Virus record (IMG/VR): IMGVR_UViG_3300031951_000001
Span: 62,001 to 126,000 of that record
Strand: one strand, 5' to 3'
DNA length: 64,000 nucleotides
Both the position numbers and the translations under genes were made by a program. How positions within the stretch are numbered: the stretch's first letter is position 1; the number at the start of each line of letters is the position of its first letter. Positions 529 to 58,691 of this stretch are shown in pieces. The notes under the pieces are model-generated. The model was given only the letters and a program-made list of their open reading frames with translations, was not told where the DNA came from and made no database searches.

Positions 529-857
529 TGGAAGACCTCAAACATAGATGGGAACAAATTGACGAGGACGATTATGTTGCCAAATATCGTGATATGATGC
601 TCCGAGTTGAAAAGATGGAGGAGCAACAATGGTGGTGGGCGGTTTATAGAGGAAAAGAAGAACTATGTCCCGAGAAACCATTTGCGAGAAAGAAAGATTA
701 TGCGATGAAGATGGCAGAGGAATGTGCCGAGGAAAACATTGAACCATATGTTTCAGATGATTTTCAGATTGGACCGGATGGTGCGTTTGAATATACTGAC
801 GATGAAATATCAGAGTGGGACGGAACATTAATGGACGGACTTGAAGAAGAGGAATAA
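525..857 (+). CDS. hypothetical protein with acidic C-terminus
   Basis: 110-aa ORF coupled to the upstream gene. Confidence 0.6.
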   Translation: MMEDLKHRWEQIDEDDYVAKYRDMMLRVEKMEEQQWWWAVYRGKEELCPEKPFARKKDYAMKMAEECAEENIEPYVSDDFQIGPDGAFEYTDDEISEWDGTLMDGLEEEE

Positions 858-1998
858 GAATATTATTTGGTTAATAATTCTCACATTAAGTGGATTGGTG
901 TCGCTCGCCCAATGTCCTAACGCAAATTTTGAATTTGGTACCTTTACTAACTGGACTGGTAAGAGAGGAACTTGTTGTCCGATTAATCTACCATTTGTAG
1001 GTATATTGGCAGGTAGACAAACAATTGTAAGTGCCGGACTTGACCCCCATTCTTGTGGGGGACTAAACAGAGTATATCAAGGTAATTTTTCGGCAAGATT
1101 GGGTAATGACCAAAACAATTCAAGAGCCGAAGGGTTGTATTATACATTTACCGTAAGCCCCGCAACAACGTTAGTTCAGTATGCTTATGCTGTTGTTTTA
1201 CAAGACCCTGGACATAATGACGGAGCTCAACCAAGATTCCAATCAAGGGTTAGATTATCTAATGGTAGTATTATACCTTGCACAGAATATGTTGTAACTG
1301 CGGGACCTAACCTTCCTGGTTATAATTATTGTATGGAAAATGATATTTTTGGAAATCCAGTACAGGTTGCTTATAGTGATTGGAGGGTTATTTCAATTGA
1401 TTTATCTTCTTATGTTGGACAAAGTGTTACACTTGAATTTGAGACAGGTGATTGTGATTTAGGTGCTCACTATGGTTACGCATATATTGACGCAATATCT
1501 TGTGGACCAATTGAGACAGAAATTTATTATTGTCAAGCAAGTGACTCTATTTTGATTGAGGGACCTGAAGGTTTTGCAACATATGAGTGGGTTGAAACTG
1601 GTGACACAACAAGGGTTATAACAATTCCCCCATTAGTTTATGATACGTTAAATTTAAATGTTACAACTGTTACTGGATGTGAATTAACTCTCCAAATTAT
1701 TTTGGACCCAATTCCACTTCTTGCAAATATTATTTGTGAGGATGTTTGTTTTCCTGATTCTAATAATTTTATTAATCTTACTCCTACCATAGAAGGATAT
1801 AATGTAAAATTTTTATGGGATTTTGACGACGGAAATATATCTGATGATATATCACCAACTCACCAGTACTTGTCACCAGGTGTTTATAATGTAACAATGA
1901 CCGCAAATGTATTAAATACAAACTGCACGGATATTGTAAATTGCGAGGTTGAGGTCTTCGATATTCCTGTAATTCCTGGAATTATTAGTCACGATTAG
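841..1998 (+). CDS. secreted Bacteroidota-type surface protein with C-terminal PKD domain
   Basis: Signal peptide ending SLA-Q; N-domain motifs SARLGN and YAVVLQDPGH; PKD motif FLWDFDDG..PTHQYLSPGVYNVTMT; ends IPVIPGIISHD. Confidence 0.75.
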   Translation: MKKRNKNIIWLIILTLSGLVSLAQCPNANFEFGTFTNWTGKRGTCCPINLPFVGILAGRQTIVSAGLDPHSCGGLNRVYQGNFSARLGNDQNNSRAEGLYYTFTVSPATTLVQYAYAVVLQDPGHNDGAQPRFQSRVRLSNGSIIPCTEYVVTAGPNLPGYNYCMENDIFGNPVQVAYSDWRVISIDLSSYVGQSVTLEFETGDCDLGAHYGYAYIDAISCGPIETEIYYCQASDSILIEGPEGFATYEWVETGDTTRVITIPPLVYDTLNLNVTTVTGCELTLQIILDPIPLLANIICEDVCFPDSNNFINLTPTIEGYNVKFLWDFDDGNISDDISPTHQYLSPGVYNVTMTANVLNTNCTDIVNCEVEVFDIPVIPGIISHD

Positions 1999-2046
1999 TC
2001 TTTTTCAAGATATTTATAGTAGAATAAACTCTAACTATTCTTTACT

Positions 2047-2604
2047 ATGAAAAAACTTATTCTATTTTTTTTGGTTCTACTTCCAGTAACATTACTGGCT
2101 CAATTTACAACTATTAATCCTGATACGGTTTGTATTAACTCTCCGTTTGCAACTTATCAGGTTCCAAATACTCCAAACTATACTTACAATTGGACTGTTT
2201 CAGCACCTGGTGTTTTAACTGCAGGTCAAGGAACAAACGAGATTACCGTTGATTGGTCGGCAGCACCTGCTGGCGGTCCTATAGTAGATGCGATTAGTGT
2301 TTATGCAACAACGCCGGCAGGTTGTGACGGACCTCCGATTACAATGAATGTTTTTATTTTGGAAATATTACCAATTGTTCTACCACTTGATTTTTGTGAA
2401 GGTGACCCTTGTGAAGATTTGGTGGCAACACCAGCTGGTGGAGTATTCACAGGACCAAATATTGTTAACGGTCAGTATTGTCCGCAAACTGCGGGAACTG
2501 AAACGGTGACTTACACCATAACTGAGGCGGGATGCACATTTACTGCGACAGCTGATATGACCGTCTATCCAATTCCTGTCTTGGACAACATTTCTCATGA
2601 CTAA
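2047..2604 (+). CDS. secreted Ig/PKD-like repeat protein
   Basis: Signal peptide ending LLA-Q; YNWTV..GQGTNEITVDW; ATPAGGVFTGP; ends IPVLDNISHD. Confidence 0.7.
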   Translation: MKKLILFFLVLLPVTLLAQFTTINPDTVCINSPFATYQVPNTPNYTYNWTVSAPGVLTAGQGTNEITVDWSAAPAGGPIVDAISVYATTPAGCDGPPITMNVFILEILPIVLPLDFCEGDPCEDLVATPAGGVFTGPNIVNGQYCPQTAGTETVTYTITEAGCTFTATADMTVYPIPVLDNISHD

Positions 2605-2606
2605 TA

Positions 2607-3179
2607 ATGAAACAAATAAAAACACTTTTGTTGTTTTTGTTGGTCATGATTGTTTCAGGACAAGACCAAAAGATAGACATATGCGAAGACGAATCTAAAA
2701 CAGAATATACGTATTCGATAGAGTCTAATACACCAAATACAACATTTTATTGGTACGTAGATGGTATCTATCATTTTGGACAAACCCTGACCGTCAATTG
2801 GGAAACTTATTCTCCTGGAGTCCATACAATTAAAGTTTATGGAAAAAGTGATGGATGTAGGTCAAACCCGATGGAGTTTAAAGTTTTCATTGGGGAATGT
2901 TCTTCAATCTATATTCCAAATGCTTTTACTCCAAACGATGATGGGTTTAACGATACTTGGTTTCCCCAAGGAACAGGATGGGAAAGTATAGAAGTATTAG
3001 TATTTGACAGATGGGGGGTACTTGTATTTAAGTCAGTTGACCCAAAAGGACAATGGATTGGTAACTTTAGAGGTGGAGAATATTACGTTCAAAATGATGT
3101 CTACGAATATAAGGTTACTTGGAAGGGTATTGACCGAGAACCTGAAATAATTTTTGGTCATGTTACAGTTGTTAGGTAA
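2607..3179 (+). CDS. secreted protein with gliding-motility-associated (T9SS type B) C-terminal domain
   Basis: Signal peptide; IYIPNAFTPNDDGFND..VFDRWG..W.G..VY.Y..GHVTVVR signature. Confidence 0.85.
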   Translation: MKQIKTLLLFLLVMIVSGQDQKIDICEDESKTEYTYSIESNTPNTTFYWYVDGIYHFGQTLTVNWETYSPGVHTIKVYGKSDGCRSNPMEFKVFIGECSSIYIPNAFTPNDDGFNDTWFPQGTGWESIEVLVFDRWGVLVFKSVDPKGQWIGNFRGGEYYVQNDVYEYKVTWKGIDREPEIIFGHVTVVR

Positions 3180-4049: not shown

Positions 4050-4868
4050 TTACGCGACGTTAATCTCAAAGTTATCAACTTTGGCAACCGCGTTAGCTCT
4101 ATGTGAGCTAGTACCTCCTCCCGCATTTATATCGGCAAAATATTCCGCAGCCTCTTTTTTGTCTGTAAAGTTTGGGAAAGTTGATGCGGATTTACCTTTA
4201 GTAAAAAATGCGATTGCGATTTTTGCTGCGATTTCAGGGTCATTAACTAAATCTGGATTTTTAACTAACTCATCACCCATACCAATCATTCTACTATATT
4301 TTTCATAATTTTTAATACCGGTTAGTTGGTTGAACCCTCTACCTCTATACGTGAAACCATCGTCTCCACCTTGATTACCAACTGTTTTAGCGTAAACTAC
4401 ATTGAAAAATTTTCTCATATCACTTTTTAATGCGTTTAATTCACTATCACTATATCCGGCCACTCTTTTACCGAATATTTTTCTAATTCTACTATTGGCC
4501 GTGGTTGCGTATGAAACCTCACTTTTAGGTTTGAAATTACATTCCTTATTAATAACTGATAAAATACCTACTTGAGTATAGGGGTTTGTTATACCCGCCT
4601 CATTCATTTTATCTATTAAAAAATTTATATTTTTTTGTTGTTCAGAATCAAAATTACCAACAATTTTCACATCACCGTTTACAGGTGAACTTTTAGTGGT
4701 GCCTGTTTCCGATGGTTTTTCTTCTGATGAGCTTGGGGTTTTGGAGGGTTTCTCAAACATTTTCTTTATTGATAAAGCAAGTGCCTTTTCAATAAAAGAT
4801 TGCTCATTTATATTGTGTAGTTTTTTTATATGACTTTTTTCTTCTTCGGTAATTAATAATTTTCTCAT
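4050..4868 (-). CDS. glycoside hydrolase family 19 (chitinase/lysozyme-like) lytic enzyme
   Basis: DGFTYRGRGFNQLTGIKNY and NPDLV..P..AA motifs; N-terminal leader MRKLLITEEEKSHIKKLH. Confidence 0.8.
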   Translation of the reverse strand: MRKLLITEEEKSHIKKLHNINEQSFIEKALALSIKKMFEKPSKTPSSSEEKPSETGTTKSSPVNGDVKIVGNFDSEQQKNINFLIDKMNEAGITNPYTQVGILSVINKECNFKPKSEVSYATTANSRIRKIFGKRVAGYSDSELNALKSDMRKFFNVVYAKTVGNQGGDDGFTYRGRGFNQLTGIKNYEKYSRMIGMGDELVKNPDLVNDPEIAAKIAIAFFTKGKSASTFPNFTDKKEAAEYFADINAGGGTSSHRANAVAKVDNFEINVA

Positions 4869-8935: not shown

Positions 8936-10528
8936 ATGGATAAAAAAATAAAAATTTTAATTTTATCGTCATTGGTCATAATGTCGGTATTTTTCATGGT
9001 TAAAACTGCGGTTTTAATCGAAATTATATCTAGCTCAAAATTAACAAGAGGAACGGAATATGTTTGTTTTTTATTTTTTATTCCTGTTTTTTACAATTTA
9101 ATTAGACACTACATTAAAACTAATAGGTTATATAATCAGTTTAAAGAATTTGAAAATTTTGTTGATACCTCAGTACTGGTTAGTAAGGCTGATAAGAATG
9201 GTAAGATAACATATGTTAACCAAAAATTCAGTGAAGTGTCAGGGTGGAGTTTAGAAGACGCCGCAGGTAAAGACCACCGAATAGTTAACTCAGGATTTCA
9301 TCCCAAAGAAATGTGGGAGGAAATGTATAAAACAACAATCAAAGATAAAAAAATATGGAATGCTGTCGTAACTAACAAAGCAAAGGATGGTCATCTATAT
9401 TGGGTTGATTCATATATTAAAGCCGAATTTGAAGAAAATGGAGACCTAAAAGGTTTTATGTCAATAAGATATGATGTTTCAGAAGTTAAGAAAAAAGAAC
9501 TTGAGATTAGAAACAGAATGAATGCCATCAATCAATCTAATGCGGTTATTGAGTTTGATTTGAGTGGTAATATAATGTATGCCAATAAAAATTTCTGTGA
9601 TACTATGGGATATACTATGGAAGAAATTGTGGGAAAACATCATAGTATATTTTTAAATGAGGAGTATTCAAAGTCACAGGAGTATAAAGAATTTTGGGAT
9701 ACTTTAAGAAGTGGTGATTTCATATCTGCTCAATTTATGAGAATTAAAAAGAATGGTGATGAAATTTGGTTACAAGCCACATATAACCCAATCTTTGATA
9801 ATGATGGTAAAGTTATTCGAATTATGAAAATTGCGATTGATATTACTGACAAAGTTTTACAATCCCAAGAGATAGAAAAAAAGAATACTTATTTGGAACA
9901 TGCCGCAAAAATATTGAGACACGACATGCACTCGGGTATTAACACTTACATGCCGAGGGGGTTAAGTTCTTTGGAGAGAAGATTAAAAACTGAAGACATT
10001 GAGAATTTAAAAATTGAAGCTCCGATTAAAATGATTAAGGAGGGATTAAGACACTCACAAAAAGTATATAAGGGTGTTTATGAATTTACCAATTTGGTTA
10101 AAAAGGATGTTGTGTTAAATAAAGCTGAATGTAATTTAAGAGACATATTAAATGATTATCTATCATCAACCGCATATCATAGTCAGGTTATTATTGAAGA
10201 ATTACCAACCATAGAAGTTAATGAAGCATTATTCTGTACTGCGGTAGATAACTTAATTAGGAATGGATTGAAGTACAATGATTCTGAATCAAAATTTGTA
10301 AAAATATACATGGAAGGTGATGAGTTAATGGTTCAGGACAATGGACGAGGTATAACTCAAGAAGATTTCGACCACTTATCAAAACCATACACAAGAAAAG
10401 AAGGACAAAAAGAGTCAGGAACTGGACTCGGATTAAACATATGTGTGGCGATATTACAAGAACACAAGTTTTTGGTAAGATGCGAGAAAAATGAGATAGG
10501 AACTAAACTGAAAATAAAAATAAAATAA
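8936..10528 (+). CDS. membrane-anchored PAS-PAS sensor histidine kinase
   Basis: Two N-terminal TM segments; two PAS/PAC domains; H-box LRHDMH, N-box NLIRNGLKY, G1 DNGRGI, G2 GTGLGL. Confidence 0.9.
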   Translation: MDKKIKILILSSLVIMSVFFMVKTAVLIEIISSSKLTRGTEYVCFLFFIPVFYNLIRHYIKTNRLYNQFKEFENFVDTSVLVSKADKNGKITYVNQKFSEVSGWSLEDAAGKDHRIVNSGFHPKEMWEEMYKTTIKDKKIWNAVVTNKAKDGHLYWVDSYIKAEFEENGDLKGFMSIRYDVSEVKKKELEIRNRMNAINQSNAVIEFDLSGNIMYANKNFCDTMGYTMEEIVGKHHSIFLNEEYSKSQEYKEFWDTLRSGDFISAQFMRIKKNGDEIWLQATYNPIFDNDGKVIRIMKIAIDITDKVLQSQEIEKKNTYLEHAAKILRHDMHSGINTYMPRGLSSLERRLKTEDIENLKIEAPIKMIKEGLRHSQKVYKGVYEFTNLVKKDVVLNKAECNLRDILNDYLSSTAYHSQVIIEELPTIEVNEALFCTAVDNLIRNGLKYNDSESKFVKIYMEGDELMVQDNGRGITQEDFDHLSKPYTRKEGQKESGTGLGLNICVAILQEHKFLVRCEKNEIGTKLKIKIK

Positions 10529-14657: not shown

Positions 14658-16523
14658 ATGGGTAAAATTATAGGTATTGATTTAGGAACAACAAATTCGT
14701 GTGTTGCCGTTATGGAAAGCGGCGAACCTGTTGTGATTACAAACAGTGAAGGAAAAAGAACCACCCCTTCAATTGTAGGTTTTGCGAATGGTGGTGAGAG
14801 AAAGATTGGTGACCCGGCTAAACGTCAATCAGTTACTAATCCTGACAAAACAGTTTATTCTATCAAACGTTTCATGGGAGGCAGTTTTGATGAGAGTAAA
14901 AAAGAAATTAAACGAGTACCTTACAAGGTAGTTAAAGGTGACGGTAATACTCCTCGTGTCCAAATTGAAGACAGGAAGTATTCACCACAAGAAATCTCGG
15001 CAATGGTTCTCCAAAAGATGAAACAAACTGCTGAAGATTATTTGGGCGAAACTGTAACAGAGGCGGTTATCACGGTACCGGCGTATTTCAACGACGCTCA
15101 ACGTCAGGCGACTAAAGAAGCTGGTGAAATCGCGGGTCTTACCGTTAGACGTATAATTAACGAACCAACTGCGGCGGCACTTGCTTACGGTCTTGACAAA
15201 CAAGGTAAAGACATGAAAGTTGTGGTGTTCGACTGTGGTGGTGGTACTCACGACGTATCAGTCCTTGAATTGGGTGATGGTGTATTTGAAGTATTGGCAA
15301 CTGATGGTGACACTCACCTCGGTGGTGATGACTTCGATAACGTAATCATTGACTGGCTCGTTAAAGAATTCCAAGATGAAAACGGACTTGATTTGACCAA
15401 AGACCCAATGGCACTTCAACGTCTCCGTGAAGGAGCTGAAAAGGCAAAAATTGAGTTGTCAACTTCACCATCAACAGAAATCAACCTACCTTACATTATG
15501 CCGGTAGATGGTGTTCCAAAACACCTTGTTCGCACAATGACAAAGGCAAAGTTTGAGCAACTTGTTGACAGTTTGGTACAACGTACAATCGCACCGTGTA
15601 AGTCAGCTCTCAAAAATGCCGGTTTGAAACCTGCGGACATTGATGAAATTATCTTGGTTGGAGGCTCAACTCGTATTCCGGCAATCCAAGAAGCGGTTAA
15701 AAAATTCTTCGGTAAAGAACCATCAAAAGGAGTTAATCCTGACGAAGTTGTGGCACTCGGTGCAGCAATTCAGGGAGGTGTACTCGCAGGGGATGTTAAA
15801 GATGTATTGTTACTTGATGTGACTCCACTATCACTTGGTATTGAAACTCAAGGTGGTGTATTCACAAAACTCATCGAGGCAAACACAACAATCCCAACTA
15901 AAAAGTCCCAAGTGTTCTCAACGGCGGTTGATAATCAACCATCAGTAGAGATTCACGTTCTACAAGGGGAGAGAGCAATGGCTCAAGACAACCGAACAAT
16001 TGGTCGTTTCATTTTGGACGGACTACCACCAGCAATGAGAGGTGTTCCACAAGTTGAAGTTACTTTTGACATCGATGCCAACGGTATTATCAATGTATCG
16101 GCGATGGATAAGGCAACCAACAAACAACAATCAATCCGTATTGAATCATCGTCAGGTCTTTCAAAAGAAGAAATCGAAAAGATGAAACAAGATGCGGAAA
16201 TGAACGCAGAGGCGGACAAAAAATCACGAGAAGATGCCGACGCTATTAACCAAGCGGATTCTTTGGTATTCCAATCCGAAAAAACCATGAAAGATTTGGA
16301 GGAGAAGATGACCGAAGAACAAAAAACCCAACTTGCTGAAGCAATATCAGAATTGAAGACATCAATCGCTGAAAAGGATATTGAAAAGGTAAGAAACGGT
16401 ACTGGTAAATTGGCGTTGGTCGCTCAAACGATTACTCAAGGAATTTATAGTCAAGGAGACGAAGGTCAAGTTAGCGACCCTGAAGTTTCAGACGTAGATT
16501 TTGAAGAAGTAAAACCAAGTTAA
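14658..16523 (+). CDS. dnaK: molecular chaperone DnaK (Hsp70)
   Basis: [50 protein letters not shown]. Confidence 0.98.
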
Positions 16524-41358: not shown

Positions 41359-43389
41359 TTATGACCCCTTCTTCTTTCTTACCTTTTTAGTCTCGATAAT
41401 TTTGACATTACCTTCTTCCGCGACTAACTCATATTCCTTTTCTTCGGATATGTTTCCTTTTAATACTTCTTCAGAAATATAATCTTCTATTTTATCTTGG
41501 ATTGCCCTTTTAAGTGGACGAGCTCCATATGTTTCATCAAAACCAACTTCAGATATTAAATCGATAATTGAATCCGTGAAATTAATTTGATATTTCAAAC
41601 CACTTAATCTTTTAGATAATTTATTCAATTCAATTTTAACAATCTCGGCAATTTGTTCTTTCTTGAGATTATTGAAGACAATTATTTCATCGATTCGGTT
41701 AAGGAATTCAGGTGCGAAGAATTTCTTCAATTCTTTTTTCAATATATCCCTTTTGTATTCTTCTTCAATGTACGTATTTGTTCCAGATTTAAATCCAATC
41801 CCCGTACCAAAATCTTGTAACATTTTAGCCCCAATGTTTGAGGTCATAATAATGACACAATTCTTGAAGTTGATTTTTCTACCCAAACCATCGGTGATAT
41901 GACCATCATCCAATACTTGTAACAGTGCTGAAAAAATATCTTTGTTTGCCTTTTCAATTTCGTCAAACAATACCACAGAATAAGGTTTGTTTTTCACTTG
42001 TTCTGTAAGTTGTCCTCCTTCATCATAACCAACATATCCGGGAGGAGCTCCAATCAAACGAGAGATTGTATGTTTTTCTTGGAATTCAGACATATCAACT
42101 CTGATAAGGCTGTCCTCACTACCAAATATTTCTTTGGCAAGTTGTTTTGCGAGTAATGTTTTACCAACACCAGTAGAGCCCAAGAATATAAATGACCCAA
42201 TTGGTTTGTTAGGGTCCTTGATACCCAAACGATTTCTTCTGATTGATTTTGAAATTTTGATTACCGCTTCTTCTTGACCAATAACTTTTCCTGAAAGATT
42301 TTTCTCTAATTCTGTCAGTAATTTTGTTTCATCGGAGTTTAGTTTTGAGATTGGAATTTTGGTCATATTTGATACAACCTCATATACCAATTCTTCGGTC
42401 ACATCTCGTTTTGATAACAACAAATCACTCTCAAATTTCTTTTTCTCATCTTCAAGTTTTGATAGGATTTTCTTTTCCTTATCTCTCAAATTTGCGGCTT
42501 CCTCATAGTTTTGTTTTTTAACAACATCTAACTTTTGTTGTTTAATATCTTGAGCCTGCTTCTTCAAATCATCAATAATCTCCGGCATCTTAATCTCAAC
42601 TTGACTACGAGCACCAACTTCATCAATGATGTCAAAGGCTTTATCAGGAAACTCACGGTCTGTAATATATCGTTCGGCCAAATCAACGCACAAACTTAAA
42701 ATTGGGTCTGAATATGATACTTTGTGATATGTTTCATATTTGTCCTTTGTATTTTTTAGAATTTGAAGTGTTTCGGCCTTTGTTGCGGCATCCACGACAA
42801 CCTTTTGGAAACGACGCTCAAGGGCCCCATCCTTTTCAAAGTTTTTACGATATTCATCATTGGTTGTTGCCCCAACACATTGAATTTCTCCACGAGCAAG
42901 TGCCGGTTTGAAGATATTGGAAGCATCTAATGACCCCGACGAGTTACCGGCTCCTACAATAGTGTGAATTTCGTCAATGAAGACAATAATATTTGGATTA
43001 CTTTGTAACTCCTCAATAATCACCTTCATACGTTCTTCAAACTGACCACGATACTTTGTACCGGCAACAATTGAAGTCATATCTAAAGATACAATTCTTT
43101 TGTCCTGTAGATTTCTTGGGCAATCTCCTTCAAAGATTTTAATTGCTAATCCTTCGACAATTGCGGTTTTACCACAACCTGGCTCACCAATGATAATTGG
43201 ATTGTTCTTTTTTCTTCTTGAAAGAATTTGAGCTATCCTTGTTATTTCTCGTTCTCTACCGACCACAGGGTCAATTTTACCTTGTTCTGCAAGTTTAATT
43301 AAATCCCTACTAAAATTATCTAGTACAGGGGTACCACTATCACTAGTTTGTTTTGATTTTTTTCCATCATTATCCGCAGATTCTATCAT
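41359..43389 (-). CDS. ClpC/ClpB-family AAA+ ATPase lacking the Clp N-domain
   Basis: Walker A GEPGCGKT and GSTGVGKT; FIDEIH; UVR-like YEEAANLRD; GAPPGYVGY; GARPL. Confidence 0.93.
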   Translation of the reverse strand: MIESADNDGKKSKQTSDSGTPVLDNFSRDLIKLAEQGKIDPVVGREREITRIAQILSRRKKNNPIIIGEPGCGKTAIVEGLAIKIFEGDCPRNLQDKRIVSLDMTSIVAGTKYRGQFEERMKVIIEELQSNPNIIVFIDEIHTIVGAGNSSGSLDASNIFKPALARGEIQCVGATTNDEYRKNFEKDGALERRFQKVVVDAATKAETLQILKNTKDKYETYHKVSYSDPILSLCVDLAERYITDREFPDKAFDIIDEVGARSQVEIKMPEIIDDLKKQAQDIKQQKLDVVKKQNYEEAANLRDKEKKILSKLEDEKKKFESDLLLSKRDVTEELVYEVVSNMTKIPISKLNSDETKLLTELEKNLSGKVIGQEEAVIKISKSIRRNRLGIKDPNKPIGSFIFLGSTGVGKTLLAKQLAKEIFGSEDSLIRVDMSEFQEKHTISRLIGAPPGYVGYDEGGQLTEQVKNKPYSVVLFDEIEKANKDIFSALLQVLDDGHITDGLGRKINFKNCVIIMTSNIGAKMLQDFGTGIGFKSGTNTYIEEEYKRDILKKELKKFFAPEFLNRIDEIIVFNNLKKEQIAEIVKIELNKLSKRLSGLKYQINFTDSIIDLISEVGFDETYGARPLKRAIQDKIEDYISEEVLKGNISEEKEYELVAEEGNVKIIETKKVRKKKGS

Positions 43390-43436
43390 AACTGTTTTTT
43401 TTCTAATAATAACCATTATTTTTTAAAAAAAAAGTT

Positions 43437-43679: not shown

Positions 43680-43709
43680 CAATTAACTCAACTCAAATAT
43701 TTATGAGTG

Positions 43710-45923
43710 ATGAGTAATTTAAAAAAGATTTTATCAAGTTTTAAGGTTAGAGAATCTTTAAATCCTAAAATTTGGAAAAAAATTGATGGTACGGTTAAAA
43801 TGAATCCAGAAGTTAGGGCAGCCCTTTTGGATATTGCTAATGATTTTATAGAGTACCTTAAAGTTGAAATTGTGGTTACGGATGTAATCATGACGGGGTC
43901 TTTGGCTAATTTTAATTGGTCAAGTTTCTCTGATATTGATTTACACATAGTTGCTGATTTCAGTCAATTTCCTGAAGAACAATTGGACCTTTACAAAGAA
44001 CTTTTTAATCTAAAAAAAACTTTATACAACGACAAACATGATATAACTATTTTTGGTTATGACGTTGAGTTATATGTTCAGAACGAAACCGAATCTCACT
44101 TTAGTAGTGGAGTTTATTCCGTTTTATTTGATGAGTGGTCAAACAAACCAAAAAAAGAAAATGTAAAAATTGATACATCATTGATTAAAACAAAAACAAA
44201 TCAATGGATGGATATTATCGATGGAGTTATTGAGAATGTATCTGACGAACCGATTGATAAGGCAAAACAAATCATCAAAAAATATAAAGACAAACTTAAA
44301 AAATATAGAACTTGCGGTCTTGAAAAACAGGGTGAATATTCTGATGAAAATCTAGTCTTTAAGGCTTTAAGAAGAAATGGGTATATTGAAAAATTACACA
44401 GTTTTGAAGACAAACTTATCGACAAAACTTACACTCTAAAAGAGGCTTCCACATCGATTGGAGGACCATTCAAAACAGATATTGAGAATGGTCCATCAAA
44501 TCACTCCAAAAGAGCATTTGGTAATTGGCAGTCAGATAACGCTTGGGACATATTTGCCCCTCCTGGTAGTGTGGTAAATTCTTACACTGAAGGTAAAGTG
44601 ACTAAAATAAGAAATACTAATAAAAGGTCAGGAAAAGTTTTCGGAACCCAAGTTAGTATTAAAGGCACTGGAGAATATCCTGATATATTTTACACTCACT
44701 TAAAGAATGTAAAACTTAAACCTGGTGATACAGTAAGATTAGGTGATTATATTGGTGAAGTCACAGAATGGTGTAAGGACGAATCATGTAAGGAAATGCA
44801 TGGAGGAACTCACGTACATTTAGGACTTCCAAAAGGAAGACATTTAAGAGAGTTACTTACTAATTCTGATAAAATATTTACGGGAAGCGAGTCTTCATCA
44901 CCATCGAAGGAAGATTCCACCGGACTAGAAATAACACCATCAAAAGAATTATCTGGAACTGAGGAAGTAAATTTTGAAAATTTTGTAGATAAGTTATCTC
45001 AACTGAAAAATTTAATCAAACCTCTAAAAAACCTAAAATCTGAGGGGTCATCGATACCATTTGATTCAAACGTTGAAACATTACAAACCGCTTTACAAAT
45101 TTTAGGTTTTTCACTGCCAAAATGGGGTGTGGATGGTAAGTTTGGTAATGAAACAGAAGCGGCTGTTAAAAAATATCAACAGTCCATTGGGTTAGAAGAA
45201 ACAGGAATAATATCACCATATGATATTGAAAAATTGGTTTCTTTGGTATCGACTACAATAGAAAAGAATCCAGATGCGGTTGGTGATGTACAAAAAACTA
45301 AGGTGGAAACTATGCCTGATGGGCCAAAACCGAATGAAATGTCACCTTCTGAAGTATCATCTACTTCAGATAATGAGTATGCGATAATTAGACCTAATGG
45401 ATACAAAGGAAATAGAGTTCACGTATTATTTGGAGGTGCTCACACTTCAGGTTATTCCCCAAATAGTGCTAAACCACAAAATATTAGAAAATATATTGGT
45501 GTAATGACACCTTATGCAAATAATATTATTATTGTTGTAACTCATCACCAAAACACTTTGGCAAATGTTAGACAATATGTTAAAGAAAAATTTGGTGGAA
45601 TTGTTACGTCTATCGCCGGATTTTCACAAGGAGGCAAGGAAGCTTGGGAACATGCTGACGACAGTACTTTGAGTTTGGTTGGTTTGATTGACCCATCAAC
45701 TTATGAGACAGGTTTAACTTTTGGTTCAAATACTATTCTTTATTGTGACCCTAAAAATTGGGGAACTTCAGGTTTTTATGGTCAAACTAGAAAAAGACTT
45801 GAATGGTATTGTGCGAACAAAAATCAATATGCTGGGCGAGTAGTATGCTTCAATAAAGGAGGTACTCACATGAATTTCGAGATATTAAAATCTTTTTACA
45901 GTCAATACGGAGGTAAGATGTAA
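43710..45923 (+). CDS. multidomain fusion: nucleotidyltransferase + M23-like + PG-binding + alpha/beta hydrolase
   Basis: GSLANFNWSSFSDIDLH; FYTHL..THVHLG; LQTALQILG..VDGKFGNETEAAVKKYQ; AGFSQGG. Confidence 0.75.
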   Translation: MSNLKKILSSFKVRESLNPKIWKKIDGTVKMNPEVRAALLDIANDFIEYLKVEIVVTDVIMTGSLANFNWSSFSDIDLHIVADFSQFPEEQLDLYKELFNLKKTLYNDKHDITIFGYDVELYVQNETESHFSSGVYSVLFDEWSNKPKKENVKIDTSLIKTKTNQWMDIIDGVIENVSDEPIDKAKQIIKKYKDKLKKYRTCGLEKQGEYSDENLVFKALRRNGYIEKLHSFEDKLIDKTYTLKEASTSIGGPFKTDIENGPSNHSKRAFGNWQSDNAWDIFAPPGSVVNSYTEGKVTKIRNTNKRSGKVFGTQVSIKGTGEYPDIFYTHLKNVKLKPGDTVRLGDYIGEVTEWCKDESCKEMHGGTHVHLGLPKGRHLRELLTNSDKIFTGSESSSPSKEDSTGLEITPSKELSGTEEVNFENFVDKLSQLKNLIKPLKNLKSEGSSIPFDSNVETLQTALQILGFSLPKWGVDGKFGNETEAAVKKYQQSIGLEETGIISPYDIEKLVSLVSTTIEKNPDAVGDVQKTKVETMPDGPKPNEMSPSEVSSTSDNEYAIIRPNGYKGNRVHVLFGGAHTSGYSPNSAKPQNIRKYIGVMTPYANNIIIVVTHHQNTLANVRQYVKEKFGGIVTSIAGFSQGGKEAWEHADDSTLSLVGLIDPSTYETGLTFGSNTILYCDPKNWGTSGFYGQTRKRLEWYCANKNQYAGRVVCFNKGGTHMNFEILKSFYSQYGGKM

Positions 45924-49958: not shown

Positions 49959-51719
49959 ATGACAAAAGAACAAGTGATGATTGAATACGTTAGGTGTATG
50001 AAGGATACTTCATATGCCCTTCGTACATATCTACAAACCTATGACAATACAGTTTCAAAATACGTTCCTTTGGAATTATTCCCTGACCAGATATCCTTAC
50101 TTGAGGATTATGAGAACTTTAATGAAAACATTGCGTTAAAATATAGACAGGCGGGGGTATCTACGGTGACCGCCGCTTGGATATCAAAAAAACTGGCGTT
50201 CGCTAAAAAAATTAAGCCTGAAAAAATTCTTATAATCGCCAACAAACTTGATACATCTCAAGAAATGGCAAATAAAATTAGGGCATTTATGACACAATGG
50301 CCGTCTTGGGTTGGGATTGATTTTTCAACAGAAAAAGACTCACAGAAACATTATAAATTAAATAATGGTTGTGAGGTTAAAGCCGTGGCAACATCTAAAG
50401 ACGCATTACGTGGATTTACCCCAACGATATTAATATTTGACGAGGCGGCATTTATAGACGCTGACAGTGATTTTTGGGCGGCTTGTATGGCGTCGTTGTC
50501 TACGGGTGGTAAAGTAATAGTTGTATCAACTCCTAACGGATATGACCCAATCTATTATGAAATCTACGACCAAGCATTAAGGAATATGAACGATTTCAAA
50601 ATTTCTGAAATGTATTGGTTTAGAGACCCAAGATATACAAAAGATTTATATCTTGTTAAGACAAAAGACATTATTCATTATCTATTAAATAAAGAAGAAT
50701 ATAATCCTGATGATATTATAAGTTGGGAAAATATACCATTTGAAAAACGAGATTACGTTGAGTTAAAATCAATTATGGACACAGGTTATAAGCCATGTTC
50801 TGCTTGGTTTGAGGGGATGGTTAAGAAACTTAAGTACGACAAACGTAAGGTTTCACAGGAATTGGAATGTAACTTTTTGGGGTCAGGTGATAACGTATTT
50901 GACTCAAATTTGTTACAAAAAGTTAGGGAAAATTATATACGAGAACCACAAAATAAAATGATGGGTAACGCCCTTTGGATTTGGAAAGAACCTGTTATTG
51001 GTCATAAGTATGTGATGGGTGTCGATGTTAGTAGGGGTGATAGTGAAGATTTTAGTTCGTTTCAAATAATTGATTTTGATACTAGAGAACAAGTTGCGGA
51101 GTTTGTTGGAAAACTTCCTCCTGACACCATGGCCGATGTTTGTTACAAATGGGCAAATATGTATTCTTGTTTTGTTGTGATTGATATCACTGGTGGAATG
51201 GGCGTTTCTACCGCAAGAAAAATGCAAGAAATAGGATATAAGGACTTATATGTTGATGGTGTTGATACCGCGAACAAATGGAAGTGGGACCCAAAGGCTG
51301 CTGAAAAAATACCGGGAATAAATTTTAACAATAAACGAGTACAGATTATTGCGGCTTTTGAGGAAGCAATGAGACACGAATTTAAGATTTACAGTAATCG
51401 TTTGTTTAACGAGATGAATACGTTTGTTTATATAAACGGACGACCTGACCACCAAAAAGGTCACCACGATGACTTAATCATGTCAATCGCTATGGCTTGT
51501 TATGTTGCGGAATCTTCATTCTCACAATTAACAAAAGTTACAGAACAGACAAAAGCGATGTTAGAATCTTGGTCTGTCAGTAATAACGATAATGTAAGTG
51601 CTCAAATCGCATTTAATCCGGTAATACCAAATTATACAGATAGAACCAATCAATTTAACGGTAATAATATAACCAAAGATGATTATATGAAATACGGTTG
51701 GTTATTTGGAGGTAGATAA
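49959..51719 (+). CDS. terminase large subunit
   Basis: KYRQAGVST (Walker A-like), LIFDEAAF, STPNG, QELEC, GVDVSRG..DFS, HDDLIMS. Confidence 0.92.
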   Translation: MTKEQVMIEYVRCMKDTSYALRTYLQTYDNTVSKYVPLELFPDQISLLEDYENFNENIALKYRQAGVSTVTAAWISKKLAFAKKIKPEKILIIANKLDTSQEMANKIRAFMTQWPSWVGIDFSTEKDSQKHYKLNNGCEVKAVATSKDALRGFTPTILIFDEAAFIDADSDFWAACMASLSTGGKVIVVSTPNGYDPIYYEIYDQALRNMNDFKISEMYWFRDPRYTKDLYLVKTKDIIHYLLNKEEYNPDDIISWENIPFEKRDYVELKSIMDTGYKPCSAWFEGMVKKLKYDKRKVSQELECNFLGSGDNVFDSNLLQKVRENYIREPQNKMMGNALWIWKEPVIGHKYVMGVDVSRGDSEDFSSFQIIDFDTREQVAEFVGKLPPDTMADVCYKWANMYSCFVVIDITGGMGVSTARKMQEIGYKDLYVDGVDTANKWKWDPKAAEKIPGINFNNKRVQIIAAFEEAMRHEFKIYSNRLFNEMNTFVYINGRPDHQKGHHDDLIMSIAMACYVAESSFSQLTKVTEQTKAMLESWSVSNNDNVSAQIAFNPVIPNYTDRTNQFNGNNITKDDYMKYGWLFGGR

Positions 51720-51784
51720 TATTTATATAAAACCAACAAAATAATATCTATTTAGTTATTATTTGTGGTGATTAAAATTACCCT

Positions 51785-53584
51785 ATGGAGAATAACAATA
51801 ATCAAATTACGGTTTGGCAAAGGTTAACGAGAGCATTTGGTCCAAATGCGTTACTCAACCAGGATTATCCAACCTACAAATTCGATAAGAAGGAGTTACT
51901 TCGCACAACTTCAAAACAAGAATACGATAAAGAGCTGTTACAAGCTCAACAAACTTTTTATTTAGCAAATCAATGGACTAAAATAGAAAGTAATCTTTAT
52001 ACCCAAGCGGTTTATTACGAACCAACAAGATTGGCTTCGTTTTATGATTATGAATCTATGGAATATACTCCCGAGATTTCAGCGGCTTTGGATATCTACG
52101 GTGAAGAGTCAACAACCGTTGACCAGAATGGTTATATGCTTCAGATTTATTCTGAATCAAAAAGAATTAAGGGTATTCTAACCGATTTATTTAACAATGT
52201 TTTAGATATTAACACCAACTTACCTATGTGGACTAGAAACACTTGTAAGTATGGTGATAACTTTGTGTATTTGAAATTAGACCCTGAAAAGGGTGTTGTT
52301 GGGTGTATGCAGTTACCGAACATTGAGATTGAGCGTTTGGAACGTGGTATGCCGGCAAAATCACAGAATGTAGAAGAACCAAAAGAAAATAGAGGGTTAA
52401 GATTTAAGTGGAAAGCAAAGGACATGGAATTTAATTCATGGGAAATTGCTCACTTTAGATTGATGGGTGATGACAGAAAGCTGCCATACGGTACATCTAT
52501 GTTGGAAAAGGCTCGTCGTATTTGGAAACAATTATTGTTATCTGAAGATGCTATGTTGATTTATAGAACATCGAGAGCACCTGAAAGAAGGGTATTCAAA
52601 GTGTTTGTTGGTAATATGGACGATAAAGATGTGGAGGCGTATGTACAACGTGTCGCCAACAAATTCAAACGTGACCAAGTTGTTGACAATAAAACAGGTA
52701 ATGTTGATATGAGATTTAATCAAATGGCCGTTGACCAAGATTACTTTATCCCTGTTAGAGACGCGGCAGCTCCAAACCCAATTGATACATTACCTGGTGC
52801 TCAAAACCTGTCAGAAATTGCGGATATTGAATATATCCAAAAGAAACTTTTGACCGCACTTCGCGTACCAAAAGCATTTTTAGGGTTTGAAGAAGTTGTT
52901 GGTGAAGGTAAAAATTTATCATTACAGGATATTCGTTTTGCTCGCACAATCAATAGAATTCAAAAATGTATGATTGCCGAATTAAATAAAATCGCAATCA
53001 TTCACTTGTTCTTGATGGGATTTGAAGATGAGTTATCAAACTTTACATTAGGGTTAACCAATCCGTCAACCCAAGCAGATTTACTTAAAATTGACGTTTG
53101 GAAAGAAAAAGTTTTATTATATAAAGACGCGGTTACCGCCATCGAAGGTATTGCACCTGTGTCAGTTTCTTGGGCTAAAAAACACGTACTTGGTTTTTCT
53201 GATGAAGAAATTAAACTTGATTTACAACAACAAAGAATTGAAAAGGCAGTTGGTGCAGAATTGACTAACACCGCAACAATCATTACACATACAGGTATAT
53301 TTGATAATATCGATAAATTATATGGTTCTATCACTGGAGGTACTGCGGCTGGAGGAGCACCACCTCCACCACCAGGAGGTGAAGAAATGGGAGGAGCTCC
53401 CCCACCATCTCCACCGGCAGGAGGTGAAGAACCGCCAATTCCCGAGTCGTTTAAGAGGGATAATTTGAAAATTTTACTAGAGAATGATAGTCTAACTGAA
53501 TCAGATAGTTTTATCGATTTATCAAGAGCTAAAAATTCTTTGGGGGAAATTGAGTCTGAATTGTCAAAACTCTTGAGGGATTGA
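51785..53584 (+). CDS. portal protein (T4 gp20-like)
   Basis: EDAMLIYRTSRAPERRVF, DYFIPVR, IDTLPGAQNL, ALRVPK. Confidence 0.93.
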   Translation: MENNNNQITVWQRLTRAFGPNALLNQDYPTYKFDKKELLRTTSKQEYDKELLQAQQTFYLANQWTKIESNLYTQAVYYEPTRLASFYDYESMEYTPEISAALDIYGEESTTVDQNGYMLQIYSESKRIKGILTDLFNNVLDINTNLPMWTRNTCKYGDNFVYLKLDPEKGVVGCMQLPNIEIERLERGMPAKSQNVEEPKENRGLRFKWKAKDMEFNSWEIAHFRLMGDDRKLPYGTSMLEKARRIWKQLLLSEDAMLIYRTSRAPERRVFKVFVGNMDDKDVEAYVQRVANKFKRDQVVDNKTGNVDMRFNQMAVDQDYFIPVRDAAAPNPIDTLPGAQNLSEIADIEYIQKKLLTALRVPKAFLGFEEVVGEGKNLSLQDIRFARTINRIQKCMIAELNKIAIIHLFLMGFEDELSNFTLGLTNPSTQADLLKIDVWKEKVLLYKDAVTAIEGIAPVSVSWAKKHVLGFSDEEIKLDLQQQRIEKAVGAELTNTATIITHTGIFDNIDKLYGSITGGTAAGGAPPPPPGGEEMGGAPPPSPPAGGEEPPIPESFKRDNLKILLENDSLTESDSFIDLSRAKNSLGEIESELSKLLRD

Positions 53585-53603
53585 TATTTATAAATAAAAA
53601 GAC

Positions 53604-54320
53604 ATGGTAAAGTTCGGTTTATTAAAATCAAAGATAGAAAAATTGATGTTAGAATCTTATTCTAACGGAACATTCAAGACTGAAATGAAAAATTTCAAAA
53701 AGAATGTATTGGAAAATAAAAACATTTCAAAACTTTTTTATCTATATGATGAATTGAATTCTAATAAAGGTTTGAATGAATCTATTGTGGATGATTATAT
53801 CTACGAATGTATAACGATATATGAAAATACAATCAATAAGATTAAAAATTCAACCCTTGTTGATTTATCTAATTGGGTGGTTAATGTAAAGTCAGATAAC
53901 AATTACTCTACTATCGACAATCTATTCTCTAATGATGTTCTCACAATTGAATCTAGATTATCTAGCAAAAAATTGATTAAAGAGTCGTTAAAGAAAAAAC
54001 CTGCAGATAAAAAAGAAGTTGTTAATTTACCATTAAGTACTATGGTAAATGTTGCTAATAAAACAATTTCTAATTTTATTGAAAGTTTGAATGAGTCTGA
54101 AAAGAAAGAATTAGTTGATTTTCTTAAGACTGACGATAAAGAATTAGAGGGTAATTTTGAGCAACTAAAAGAAAGTGTCACCAAAAAATTGGAGACAATT
54201 AAAGAGAATGCTGACACAGAAACTAAAAGTAGGATTAATGAAACTTTGGAAAAGGTGGTTTCAGAAAAATACGACAAATTTACTTATTTCAAATTAAAGA
54301 ATCTTAACGAGAATCTTTAA
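53604..54320 (+). CDS. head-module hypothetical protein
   Basis: 238 aa directly after the portal; LNES motifs. Confidence 0.7.
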   Translation: MVKFGLLKSKIEKLMLESYSNGTFKTEMKNFKKNVLENKNISKLFYLYDELNSNKGLNESIVDDYIYECITIYENTINKIKNSTLVDLSNWVVNVKSDNNYSTIDNLFSNDVLTIESRLSSKKLIKESLKKKPADKKEVVNLPLSTMVNVANKTISNFIESLNESEKKELVDFLKTDDKELEGNFEQLKESVTKKLETIKENADTETKSRINETLEKVVSEKYDKFTYFKLKNLNENL

Positions 54321-54505
54321 AAGTCTTTGTTTTTCATTTTCTGAACATACTTGGCCTTTTTCAACATTTTTCTTTTTCTAACCGACTTCTTTTCATACTC
54401 CTTTCTTTCGACGAGTTGACTTGACTGTCGGGTCTTAATCACTTTACTTTTGAGTAACTTTAATGCTCTCTCAATACCGTTTTTATCTACTTTGACAATT
54501 AACAT
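54317..54505 (-). CDS. rpsU: phage-encoded ribosomal protein bS21
   Basis: IERALKLLKSKV..RKEYEKKSVRKR pattern; 62 aa, basic. Confidence 0.85.
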   Translation of the reverse strand: MLIVKVDKNGIERALKLLKSKVIKTRQSSQLVERKEYEKKSVRKRKMLKKAKYVQKMKNKDF

Positions 54506-54599
54506 ATATAATAAATAACGCTTAAATTGAATTTTTTTTGACTACCGATACAAATATACTTATTTTTTTAAAAATAAACATCGGTAAAATGAAAAGTTG

Positions 54600-55061
54600 A
54601 TGAAAAAAGGGAAAACTTCACCAATCGCAGGATTTAAAAATGCGAAGGTGATTTATGGCACGGTAGATTCAGTTGAATTTAAGTCTTTATATTTAAACAT
54701 ACAAACTTGGGTAGAACCAATTGTTGATTCTGATAACTGGCAAAGGGTTGTATTAAATCTAACAAGGTCGATTAAACATACGGTACATGAAATATTAGAT
54801 AGATTAGTCTTTGAGGAAAACTTTATTGTGGATTTAGATTTAAGGTCAAGTGGATTATCTCTAAAGAAAAAATCGTTTTTAAATCTAGAGATAAATTTTT
54901 ATATTAAAAAGAAAGATTTAGATTTTAAATCAAAAAAATTAAAGGATATATTGAAAAAAGTAACCAAGGAAATAATATCAATACACTTCACAAAAAACGA
55001 ATACTTCAAATTTTATTTACGTAAAACCGTCAAACCAAAGGAAACTATACTACAAAGTTGA
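54600..55061 (+). CDS. hypothetical protein
   Basis: YGTVD..SLYLNIQTW..IVDLDLRSSG. Confidence 0.7.
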   Translation: MKKGKTSPIAGFKNAKVIYGTVDSVEFKSLYLNIQTWVEPIVDSDNWQRVVLNLTRSIKHTVHEILDRLVFEENFIVDLDLRSSGLSLKKKSFLNLEINFYIKKKDLDFKSKKLKDILKKVTKEIISIHFTKNEYFKFYLRKTVKPKETILQS

Positions 55062-55085
55062 AAAACAAAGTATTTATTATAAAAA

Positions 55086-55811
55086 ATGAATATGGAAGTT
55101 TTGAAACCCGGACAATCAGGCAAAGGCATTCTAATCGAATACGATGCTGGATACTTATCACCAACTGAAAAACGTAATGTTGATTTGATACATGAGTCCA
55201 AAGGAATGTTGGACCATTCAAAACCATTTGAATTCTACGCAGTACTTCAGAAATTTAACACCCCAAACAGAAACGGAAGAATATATCCTGAAAAAGTATT
55301 AAAGAGAGAAGCCGACAATTATAAGAAAATGATTAACAAGGGTATTGCTTTATCCGAACTTAATCACCCTGAGTCATCACTTGTTGACTTGGACAGAGTT
55401 TCTCATTCAATTAGTGATATATGGTGGGAAGGTCCTGTTCTTATGGGTAAATTAAAATTATTAACTTCACCAGGTTTTCATGAGAGAGGTATTGTATCAA
55501 CCAAAGGAGACCAAGCGGCAAATCTTTTAAGACAAGGTGTTACACTTGGTATATCATCTCGTGGTGTAGGGTCGCTTAAAAAAATTGGGGAACAAAACGA
55601 AGTACAGGATGACTTTGAGTTGATTTGTTTTGACCTTGTATGGTCTCCATCCACTCCTGGTGCTTATCTTTTCACTGAACCTGATGACAGATTTAAGTTT
55701 GAAGAAAACTTGGATGAGGAGAAAAAAATGAAAGCTGAAAGAGAATTTGGTGGCCCAACCGACAAATCGCTTGACTTAATGAAGAAATTGAACGATTATT
55801 TGGGTTACTAA
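55086..55811 (+). CDS. prohead core protease (T4 gp21-like)
   Basis: NRNGRIYP, ELNHP, VSH, GISSRGVGS, FDLV..PSTPGA. Confidence 0.92.
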   Translation: MNMEVLKPGQSGKGILIEYDAGYLSPTEKRNVDLIHESKGMLDHSKPFEFYAVLQKFNTPNRNGRIYPEKVLKREADNYKKMINKGIALSELNHPESSLVDLDRVSHSISDIWWEGPVLMGKLKLLTSPGFHERGIVSTKGDQAANLLRQGVTLGISSRGVGSLKKIGEQNEVQDDFELICFDLVWSPSTPGAYLFTEPDDRFKFEENLDEEKKMKAEREFGGPTDKSLDLMKKLNDYLGY

Positions 55812-55822
55812 AACTCAATAAA

Positions 55823-56032: not shown

Positions 56033-56103
56033 TCAAAAAATTATCAATAGTTGTAAAAGGAGGGGAAACCCTCCTTTTTTTTATTCTGATATATTTATCA
56101 GAT

Positions 56104-58663: not shown

Positions 58664-58691
58664 ACTTTAAATTAATAAAAAACCAAACAAA

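Follow-up and report, generated by a model that had tools for sequence, protein, structure and literature searches.

Organization of the locus

We analyzed a window of 64,000 nucleotides (positions 62,001 to 126,000 of IMG/VR record IMGVR_UViG_3300031951_000001) from the 322-kb genome of a giant freshwater phage. Near the start of the window three consecutive genes, ORF1, ORF2 and ORF3, encode separately exported proteins, with the following features.

841 to 1998, plus strand: ORF1 (385 aa, TTG start), proposed tip or head subunit; signal peptide aa 1-23, jelly-roll MAM/CBM-like head aa 24-222, Ig-like domain aa 223-293, PKD domain aa 294-373, tail aa 374-385.
1984 to 1995, plus strand: core of the ORF1 C-terminal tail, I-S-H-D, followed by a TAG stop.
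2047 to 2604, plus strand: ORF2 (185 aa), proposed adaptor subunit; signal peptide aa 1-18, N-terminal PKD_6-like putative acceptor domain aa 19-104, second Ig-like domain aa 105-173, tail aa 174-185.
2590 to 2601, plus strand: core of the ORF2 C-terminal tail, I-S-H-D, followed by a TAA stop two bases before the ORF3 start.
2607 to 3179, plus strand: ORF3 (190 aa), proposed anchor or carrier subunit; signal peptide aa 1-18, N-terminal domain aa 19-98 homologous to the ORF2 putative acceptor domain, type-B T9SS CTD aa 99-190.
2901 to 3176, plus strand: type-B (CHU_C / TIGR04131) T9SS sorting domain of ORF3, starting IYIPNAFTPNDDGFND and ending GHVTVVR.

ORF1 ends with VFDIPVIPGIISHD (...IISHD) and ORF2 with VYPIPVLDNISHD (...NISHD). 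All three proteins start with a basic n-region, a hydrophobic h-region and an A/G↓Q cleavage context (SLA↓QC, LLA↓QF and VSG↓QD, respectively; for ORF3, MKQIKTLLLFLLVMIVSG↓Q). These signal peptides were read by eye, following the Bacteroidota ‘Q-rule’, and no signal-peptide predictor was run; no lipobox was seen. In profile searches only ORF3 matched CHU_C (PF13585, 50.1 bits, cut-off 27) and TIGR04131 (46.7 bits, cut-off 35); ORF1 and ORF2 had no match and are not members of this class. ORF1 contains a PKD domain (35.9 bits) and ORF2 a PKD_6 domain (PF19408, aa 22-88, 39.5 bits, cut-off 25); the two domains of ORF2 match repeats of adhesins of 1,000-6,000 aa. The N-terminal domains of the ORF2 and ORF3 families are homologous by profile comparison (hhalign, probability 99%, E-value 7e-18). 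No match to PorP/SprF (PF11751) was found anywhere in the phage genome at E-value ≤1.

The AF2 model of ORF1 had pLDDT 88. In Foldseek searches it resembled MAM-Ig modules, TmCBM61 (TM by target 0.68) and an AFDB ‘carbohydrate binding protein’ (TM by hit 0.73). In this monomer model residues 374-385 have no secondary structure and the last block has pLDDT 67.

The observation made in the earlier note, that three consecutive signal-peptide proteins are encoded, of which the first two share a C-terminal ISHD tail and only the third carries a type-B T9SS CTD, was confirmed.

Conservation of the C-terminal tail

Among 333 ORFs of at least 100 aa in the phage genome 0.04 are expected by chance to end with I-x-H-[DN]; two do, and they are the adjacent ORF1 and ORF2. 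Lack of conservation of the tail in homologs had been named in advance as an outcome that would refute the interpretation given in the earlier note; we observed the opposite. I(-4) and H(-2) are nearly invariant at the extreme C-terminus of more than 200 homologs in two families, down to about 40% identity, while the preceding linker varies. Of the best 120 ORF1 homologs, 107 end in a tail-like terminus (last residue D/N after one of H/S/F/Y/I/V/P/W); among them I(-4) is present in 107 of 107 and H(-2) in 88 of 107, with the last residue being N in 65 and D in 42. In the ORF2 family, for which we found 191 short homologs, I(-4) is present in 118 of 120 and H(-2) in 119 of 120 sequences, with the last residue being N (47), D (32), F (31) or Y (8). 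No covariation between tail residues and acceptor N-termini was visible; the D/N switches look neutral.

The search for tail-bearing genes next to type-B CTD genes, also proposed beforehand as a test, showed that the tail is modular. The ORF2 family is present in 135 IMG/VR loci. At least five unrelated head families carry the same tail and sit directly upstream of an ORF2-ORF3 pair: the ORF1-like family, a family of ∼197 aa (62 loci), an ALK/LTK-type Gly-rich domain, an SprB-repeat protein and a 244-aa protein; a bacterial CUB+PKD protein of 771 aa does the same. Such arrangements were seen in 80 phage loci (37 clusters at 90% identity, 14 at 70%) and in two Bacteroidota MAG loci, one in clearly chromosomal context. 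Of the 80 phage loci, ORF3 was called directly downstream in 70 of the 73 with enough sequence (in the other three an ORF3-family ORF was listed but fell outside the gap criterion), and a tail-bearing ORF lies directly upstream in 67 of 78. The ORF2 stop and the ORF3 start overlap by one base in 50 of 70 related loci. A Ferruginibacter MAG has the system in chromosomal context; it is not phage-specific. A Flavobacteriales MAG has the order head, ORF2, ORF2, ORF3, i.e. three tails and three putative acceptors.

A phage GenBank collection searched in DNA and protein modes returned no match. A profile search for ORF2 orthologs in 401 sampled Bacteroidota genomes found none at E-value ≤1e-20; as only eight candidates were scored per genome, orthologs are rare in the genomes searched but not proven absent. 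A DNA pattern for I-x-H-N-stop in 41 genomes of the same family as the Ferruginibacter MAG gave counts equal to those of the reversed-pattern control, the apparent clusters in genome G430 contained no tail-ended ORFs, and the approach was abandoned. Two small contigs from RNA libraries cover the ORF2 3′-end and the ORF2-ORF3 junction; the three differences listed in that contig are two synonymous changes and one intergenic change, leaving the tail unchanged. DNA carry-over cannot be excluded here, so this observation does not show transcription. A promoter and terminator scan found no more sites than in shuffled sequence.

Split and single-chain versions

We observed a Rosetta-stone pattern twice. 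ORF1-like heads occur as single chains of 633-901 aa with their own CTD, no tail and no adjacent ORF2 or ORF3. In addition, a 604-aa protein encoded in this same phage (G000:C1:51331-53145, G000 being this genome) consists of the X-family head, the two ORF2-like domains and an ORF3-like part in one chain, collinear with the split genes. In this fused protein and in three of four homologs that span this junction, I-T-H-N lies four residues upstream of the PDTTC start of the ORF2-like domain. At the second junction A-P-N-I-I-Y-S-AEL-IDLC aligns with the ORF2 tail plus the mature N-terminus of ORF3. The split genes are therefore cut immediately after the motif. (One combined MAFFT alignment of the fused protein with all fragments misaligned the fragments and was discarded in favour of another.) The AF2 model of the fused junction places ITHN in a confident region (block pLDDT 87) with T-H in a strand or bridge, while the same motif in trans, on monomeric ORF1, is coil with pLDDT 67.

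Proposed assembly

In our view the three genes most likely encode one modular cell-surface adhesin made of a tip, an adaptor and an anchor, although we hold this reading as only somewhat more probable than not. ORF1 would be the tip, a carbohydrate-binding/MAM-like jelly-roll head on an Ig plus PKD stalk; ORF2 would be the adaptor, with two Ig-like domains; ORF3 would be the anchor, with one Ig-like domain and a type-B T9SS CTD. After Sec export and signal-peptide cleavage, the tail (P)-I-x-H-[D/N] of ORF1 would dock as a short beta-strand extension onto the N-terminal PKD_6-like domain of ORF2, and the tail of ORF2 would dock in the same way onto the homologous domain of ORF3. In this view the motif is the same element that precedes the ORF2-like domain in cis in single-chain relatives. 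The CTD of ORF3 would then take the folded complex through the host T9SS translocon and hand it to a host PorP/SprF-like shuttle, so that the infected Bacteroidota cell displays a phage-specified adhesin; the head is exchangeable between phages, while adaptor and anchor are conserved. The architecture agrees with this logic, as heads have a tail only, ORF2 has a putative acceptor and a tail, and ORF3 has a putative acceptor and a CTD. The T9SS moves folded proteins, and orphan type-B CTDs can use a shared host shuttle (PMC9251779, PMC12618676).

The gene structure, the domains, the conservation of the motif, the modular synteny, the existence of fused and split forms and the motif in cis are shown, and the reading rests on comparative genomics; the binding of tail to domain, the order of assembly, co-translocation and the biological role are our inference. 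There is no direct evidence of binding, and dependence of secretion on the T9SS, the CTD or the tail was not measured. Co-folding, which had been suggested as a check of strand insertion, was run once, with mature ORF1 + ORF2 + ORF3; the score was 0.50, against 0.01 and 0.00 in controls with the partner replaced and 0.59 in a control with ORF1 replaced, an outcome that speaks neither for nor against docking and is not used here as evidence. The putative acceptor domains appear complete, with no obvious empty groove. The tail-to-acceptor ratio is not always 1:1: the phage of loci L030/L060 has three tail-ended ORFs for two acceptors, and some phages have an ORF1-like gene next to a bare 111-aa CTD protein with the ORF2-ORF3 pair elsewhere in the genome (loci L017 and L043, about 30 kb apart). 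Piggy-back export has not, to our knowledge, been demonstrated for the T9SS, and in the library searched we found no report of it, nor any description of this tail or of split type-B adhesins. The role of the conserved His is unexplained. The tail as a whole is strongly conserved and modular, which fits an assembly tag.

The interpretation given in the earlier note, that the ISHD tail is a donor strand or piggy-back signal assembling the subunits onto the CTD carrier so that the phage builds its own surface structure through the host T9SS, is partly supported. The three genes are a real, conserved split of an adhesin that also exists as one chain, and the PorP/SprF-like partner that the note did not see in the window is absent from the phage genome as well; yet the lack of an adjacent shuttle gene is not anomalous, as orphan type-B substrates in Flavobacterium johnsoniae share a host shuttle (PMC12618676). 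A strict donor strand supplying a missing Ig strand is not supported. The acceptor N-termini (QxTTxNPDTVC) align, through TxNPDTVC, with the generic first strand [VI]-[ST]-G-P-x-x-V-C of PKD_6 repeats, so no strand seems missing, and only 4-5 tail residues are conserved (I(-4), H(-2) and the terminal residue among them); with no structure of the complex obtained, these observations do not settle whether strand complementation takes place. The tail looks like a short edge-strand or N-terminal-extension docking motif, and its likely acceptor is the N-terminal domain of the next subunit (ORF1 to ORF2 to ORF3), not necessarily the CTD carrier for both tails.

One could speculate further, and we do so tentatively, that the I-x-H-[N/D] tail is a general ‘plug’ that lets CTD-less proteins hitch-hike through the T9SS. 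A family of Bacteroidota phages, and some bacteria, would use it as a plug-and-display system, with interchangeable ligand-binding heads mounted, via one or more adaptors (possibly a short polymer), on a single CTD anchor. Phages would exploit it to re-decorate the infected cell surface, e.g. for adhesion to particles or for excluding other phages. As T9SS cargo is defined today by a covalently attached C-terminal domain, a conserved four-residue tag attaching CTD-less subunits to a CTD carrier would be the first case of multi-subunit (piggy-back) cargo for this system. It would change the prediction of T9SS secretomes, since proteins ending I-x-H-N next to small CTD proteins are currently missed; it would show that large freshwater phages remodel the surface of Bacteroidota hosts with their own adhesins; and it would offer a very small natural docking tag for surface display in Bacteroidota.

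Alternative explanations

It is possible, though unlikely, that the tail is an independent sorting or recognition signal read by a host component (a T9SS part, a PorP/SprF-like shuttle, a periplasmic chaperone or another surface protein), with each subunit exported or anchored on its own and the neighbourhood of the CTD gene reflecting only a shared function. The same short motif does sit on many unrelated proteins, as sorting signals do, both tails in one phage are nearly identical and tails can outnumber acceptor domains (L030/L060). Still, in fused relatives the motif is internal, directly upstream of the ORF2-like domain, where it cannot act as a C-terminal signal; fused forms with their own CTD drop the tail; and the T9SS signals described are folded domains of 70-100 aa (PMC12618676). 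Slightly less likely, the tail could be a vestige of the inter-domain linker left when a single-chain gene was split, kept only for folding or stability of the last Ig domain or as a cap, with the subunits acting separately in the periplasm or being released. The tail does sit where the next Ig domain would begin, and in giant repeat adhesins the linker V.V.P.P is followed by [TV][VP][ST]-I-[TS]-G. However, a vestige would not keep I and H nearly invariant, and the chain ending exactly one residue after the His, across at least 14 deep lineages and at least five head families while the linker drifts; I-x-H-[DN] is not enriched in generic repeat linkers (16 observed, 23 expected), and the monomer model leaves the tail unpacked.

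Covalent joining of the C-terminal Asn/Asp to the next subunit, by a transpeptidation or isopeptide-type reaction as in sortase-built or SpyTag-like systems, seems more doubtful yet. A conserved His next to a terminal Asn/Asp is chemically suggestive, and Bacteroidota use a sortase-like PorU for type-A cargo; but about a third of the ORF2 family ends in F or Y, the second junction of fused proteins tolerates Y-S in place of H-N and no candidate enzyme is conserved in the neighbourhood. That the three ORFs are one gene broken by mutation, or read through by recoding or frameshifting, is very unlikely. The domain order resembles that of one-chain adhesins and ORF2 and ORF3 are only two bases apart, yet each ORF has its own signal peptide, the split with its tails is conserved in dozens of lineages, the two stops differ (TAG and TAA) and the rest of the genome reads normally under table 11. 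An intein-like role of the terminal H-N was also rejected, as there was no Hint or intein Pfam match and the motif is the last residue pair of an Ig-domain protein with no C-extein.

Comparison with known systems

In Tat ‘hitchhiker’ and peroxisomal ‘piggy-back’ transport a subunit without the targeting signal is carried across a membrane by a signal-bearing partner, in a system that moves folded proteins, as would be the case here, though with a different membrane and a different machine. In comparison with cellulosome dockerin-cohesin assembly, there is no dockerin or cohesin fold, the tag is a tetrapeptide, the organisms are Gram-negative and assembly must precede or accompany outer-membrane translocation.

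Type V pili of Bacteroidota (FimA/Mfa1) and chaperone-usher pili, which use donor-strand complementation or exchange, share the logic of a tip with only a donor element, a middle subunit with acceptor and donor, and an anchor with only an acceptor; the modules are Ig-like and a C-terminal element is proposed to bind the next subunit. However, among the conserved neighbours we found no chaperone or usher and no lipoprotein pilins with protease priming, no protease-primed groove is present, the acceptor domains look complete, the conserved element has 4-5 residues rather than being a full strand of 10-20, and export would be through the T9SS.

The closest systems are the type-B CTD adhesins of the T9SS (SprB, Fjoh_3952, PG1035) with their PorP/SprF-like shuttles. 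ORF3 carries a bona fide type-B CTD, heads and stalks use the same domain repertoire (PKD, PKD_6, SprB repeats, CBM-like heads) and single-chain relatives exist, including one in this phage. What differs is that the cargo is split into two to four polypeptides of which only the last has the CTD while the others carry a conserved four-residue tail, and that the genes are phage-borne with no shuttle gene encoded alongside.

Gene content and domain structure

The window (bases 62,001-126,000) belongs to a 322,372-bp IMG/VR virus record with 34% GC, judged complete, which is a T4-like jumbo phage. The T4-type structural module, with large terminase (Terminase_6N), portal gp20 and major capsid gp23, lies further along the window, at 49959-60545; the same phage or near relatives occur in many lake and freshwater metagenomes. 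At 841-3179 we observed three ORFs on the same strand:

841-1998, ORF1, 385 aa, TTG start
2047-2604, ORF2, 185 aa
2607-3179, ORF3, 190 aa

Each ORF begins with a typical signal peptide ending in the Bacteroidota context, A/G followed by Q. ORF1 ends ...VFDIPVIPGIISHD and ORF2 ends ...VYPIPVLDNISHD, while only ORF3 matches the type-B T9SS sorting domain, with PF13585 at 50.1 bits and TIGR04131 at 46.7 bits, both above cut-off. No PorP/SprF gene was found anywhere in the phage genome. The observation made in the earlier note, of three consecutive signal-peptide proteins with only the third carrying a type-B CTD and no PorP/SprF-like partner in view, is therefore correct as written. In the whole genome only these two ORFs, ORF1 and ORF2, end I-x-H-[DN], against 0.04 expected.

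An AlphaFold2 model of ORF1 (pLDDT 88) shows a jelly-roll head (aa 24-222), an Ig-like domain and a PKD domain. The head resembles MAM domains and carbohydrate-binding modules, e.g. TmCBM61 (TM by target 0.68) and an AFDB ‘carbohydrate binding protein’ (TM by hit 0.73). The last 12 residues have no secondary structure in this model, and the last block has pLDDT 67. ORF2 consists of a PKD_6 domain and a second Ig-like domain, whose relatives are the repeats of Bacteroidota adhesins of 1,000-6,000 aa. The N-terminal domain of ORF3 is homologous to the first domain of ORF2 (hhalign probability 99%, E 7e-18).

Other genes of the window were recorded as well:

4050-4868 (-), just downstream of the trio, a GH19 (chitinase class I-like) putative lysin
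8936-10528 (+), a PAS-domain protein with an HATPase_c domain (histidine-kinase-like sensor)
14658-16523 (+) and 41359-43416 (-), a full-length Hsp70/DnaK (855 bits) and a ClpB-like double AAA+ protein, a chaperone set that is unusual for a phage
43707-45923 (+), a 738-aa protein combining a nucleotidyltransferase, an M23 peptidase and a peptidoglycan-binding domain

Conservation of the C-terminal tail

Absence of the tail from homologs had been named beforehand as an outcome that would count against a role in assembly; we observed conservation instead. Among the best 120 homologs of ORF1 (40-97% identity), 107 end in a tail-like terminus; I(-4) is present in all 107, H(-2) in 88, and the last residue is N in 65 and D in 42. 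Four are 616-aa single chains with their own CHU_C domain. Among the best 120 short homologs of ORF2, I(-4) is present in 118 and H(-2) in 119, and the last residue is N, D, F or Y. In giant repeat adhesins the linker V.V.P.P is followed by [TV][VP][ST]-I-[TS]-G, so the tail sits where the next domain would start; however, I-x-H-[DN] itself is not enriched there (16 observed, 23 expected).

We examined 104 related IMG/VR loci, in which ORF2 and ORF3 homologs are almost always adjacent. ORF3 is called directly downstream in 70 of 73 loci with enough sequence; the other three list an ORF3-family ORF that fell outside our gap criterion. The stop and start overlap by one base in 50 of 70 loci, and a tail-bearing ORF lies directly upstream in 67 of 78. 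The upstream protein is not always ORF1-like: in 62 loci it is an unrelated ~197-aa family, while in others it is an ALK/LTK-type glycine-rich protein (349-371 aa), an SprB-repeat protein (262 aa) or a 244-aa protein. All of these have signal peptides and all end I-x-H-N; in one related locus, L115, both tails end H-Y. The loci form 37 clusters at 90% identity and 14 at 70%.

In related phages, proteins of 111 aa consisting only of a signal peptide and a type-B CTD (‘bare CTD’) are encoded at L017:5430-5765 and L018:5430-5765, next to the ORF1-like gene, and at L021:770-1105, where the gene lies about 5 kb upstream; they could be minimal carriers or competitors for host shuttles. In the clade with the order ORF2-ORF3-ORF1, a small outer-membrane-protein-like gene (L006:4066-4590, 174 aa, ending ...VIYNF) precedes ORF2, and a 48-aa single-TM or lipoprotein-like ORF (L006:5853-5999) lies between ORF3 and ORF1; these are possible extra components.

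Fused and split forms

ORF1-like heads also occur as 633-901-aa single chains with PKD repeats and their own type-B CTD, which have no tail and no adjacent ORF2/ORF3 (loci L022, L023, L026, L027 and L031-L034). More tellingly, the same phage encodes, about 9 kb upstream of window base 1, a 604-aa single-chain paralogous adhesin (G000:C1:51331-53145 in the phage genome, L002:187-1998 in the corresponding locus). Its order is the ~197-aa head family, Cys-rich repeats, the two ORF2-like domains, the ORF3-like domain and a type-B CTD, and it is therefore collinear with the trios of other phages.

The first internal junction of this protein reads FSMGD-ITHN-FIPC-PDTTC, and ITHN is kept in three of the four homologs that span the junction. 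The second junction, AP-NIIYS-AEL-IDLC, aligns with the ORF2 tail (LD-NISHD) plus the mature N-terminus of ORF3 (QDQK-IDIC). So the motif is an N-terminal extension of the ORF2-like (PKD_6-like) domain in cis, and the split genes are cut right after it. An AlphaFold2 model of the fused junction (pLDDT 89.6) puts ITHN in a confident block (87), with T-H in a strand or bridge; the contacts of these residues are not known. The internal I-T-H-N lies just upstream of the ORF2-like domain.

Occurrence in bacteria

The arrangement is not confined to phages. A Flavobacteriales MAG (974-kb contig) has a 771-aa CUB+PKD head ending AITHN, two ORF2 copies ending PIQHN, and an ORF3-like CTD protein. A Ferruginibacter MAG has three consecutive genes, encoding a protein of at least 1,532 aa ending IIIYHN, a protein of about 525 aa ending AITHN, and a 358-aa protein that begins AQ followed by NAMPDTVC and ends in a type-B CTD; these are flanked by what look, by eye, like trehalase, MFS-transporter and LacI-type genes. 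Close ORF2 orthologs were not found in 401 sampled Bacteroidota genomes. The bacterial form therefore seems uncommon or divergent.

Proposed mechanism

Heads carry only a tail, ORF2 carries an acceptor-type domain and a tail, and ORF3 carries an acceptor-type domain and the CTD, which is the logic of tip, shaft and anchor. We propose that each tail docks, as a short edge-strand or extension with I and H facing the domain, onto the N-terminal PKD_6-like domain of the next subunit (ORF1 to ORF2 to ORF3). The folded complex would then leave through the host T9SS on the CTD of ORF3 and be held by a host PorP/SprF-like shuttle. Orphan type-B CTDs that use a shared host shuttle are documented in F. 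johnsoniae (PMC12618676), and the T9SS moves folded proteins (PMC9251779).

The interpretation offered in the earlier note, that the tail is a donor strand or a piggy-back signal assembling the subunits onto the CTD carrier, is partly supported. A classical donor strand that fills a missing strand is not supported, because the acceptor domains keep their own first strand and only 4-5 tail residues are conserved. While the gene structure, the conserved tail and the fused and split forms are shown, binding, the order of assembly, co-translocation and the benefit to the phage are all inferred; possible benefits are adhesion to particles via a CBM-like head, or exclusion of other phages. Co-folding, suggested in advance as a way to look for insertion of the C-terminal strand, returned no verdict and thus leaves docking neither favoured nor disfavoured. 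The tail-to-acceptor count is not always 1:1, no covariation was seen, and the role of the conserved His is unexplained. RNA support amounts to two small contigs, which could be DNA carry-over. These are weak points of the proposal, which offers a clear route to experiment.

Relation to known T9SS adhesins

In the literature searched we found nothing on this tail, on split type-B adhesins, on phage-encoded T9SS cargo of this kind, or on piggy-back export by the T9SS. T9SS type-B adhesins themselves are already known, and we regard the trio as a variant of them, differing in that the adhesin is split among separately encoded subunits, of which only ORF3 carries the type-B CTD while ORF1 and ORF2 end in the conserved tail.
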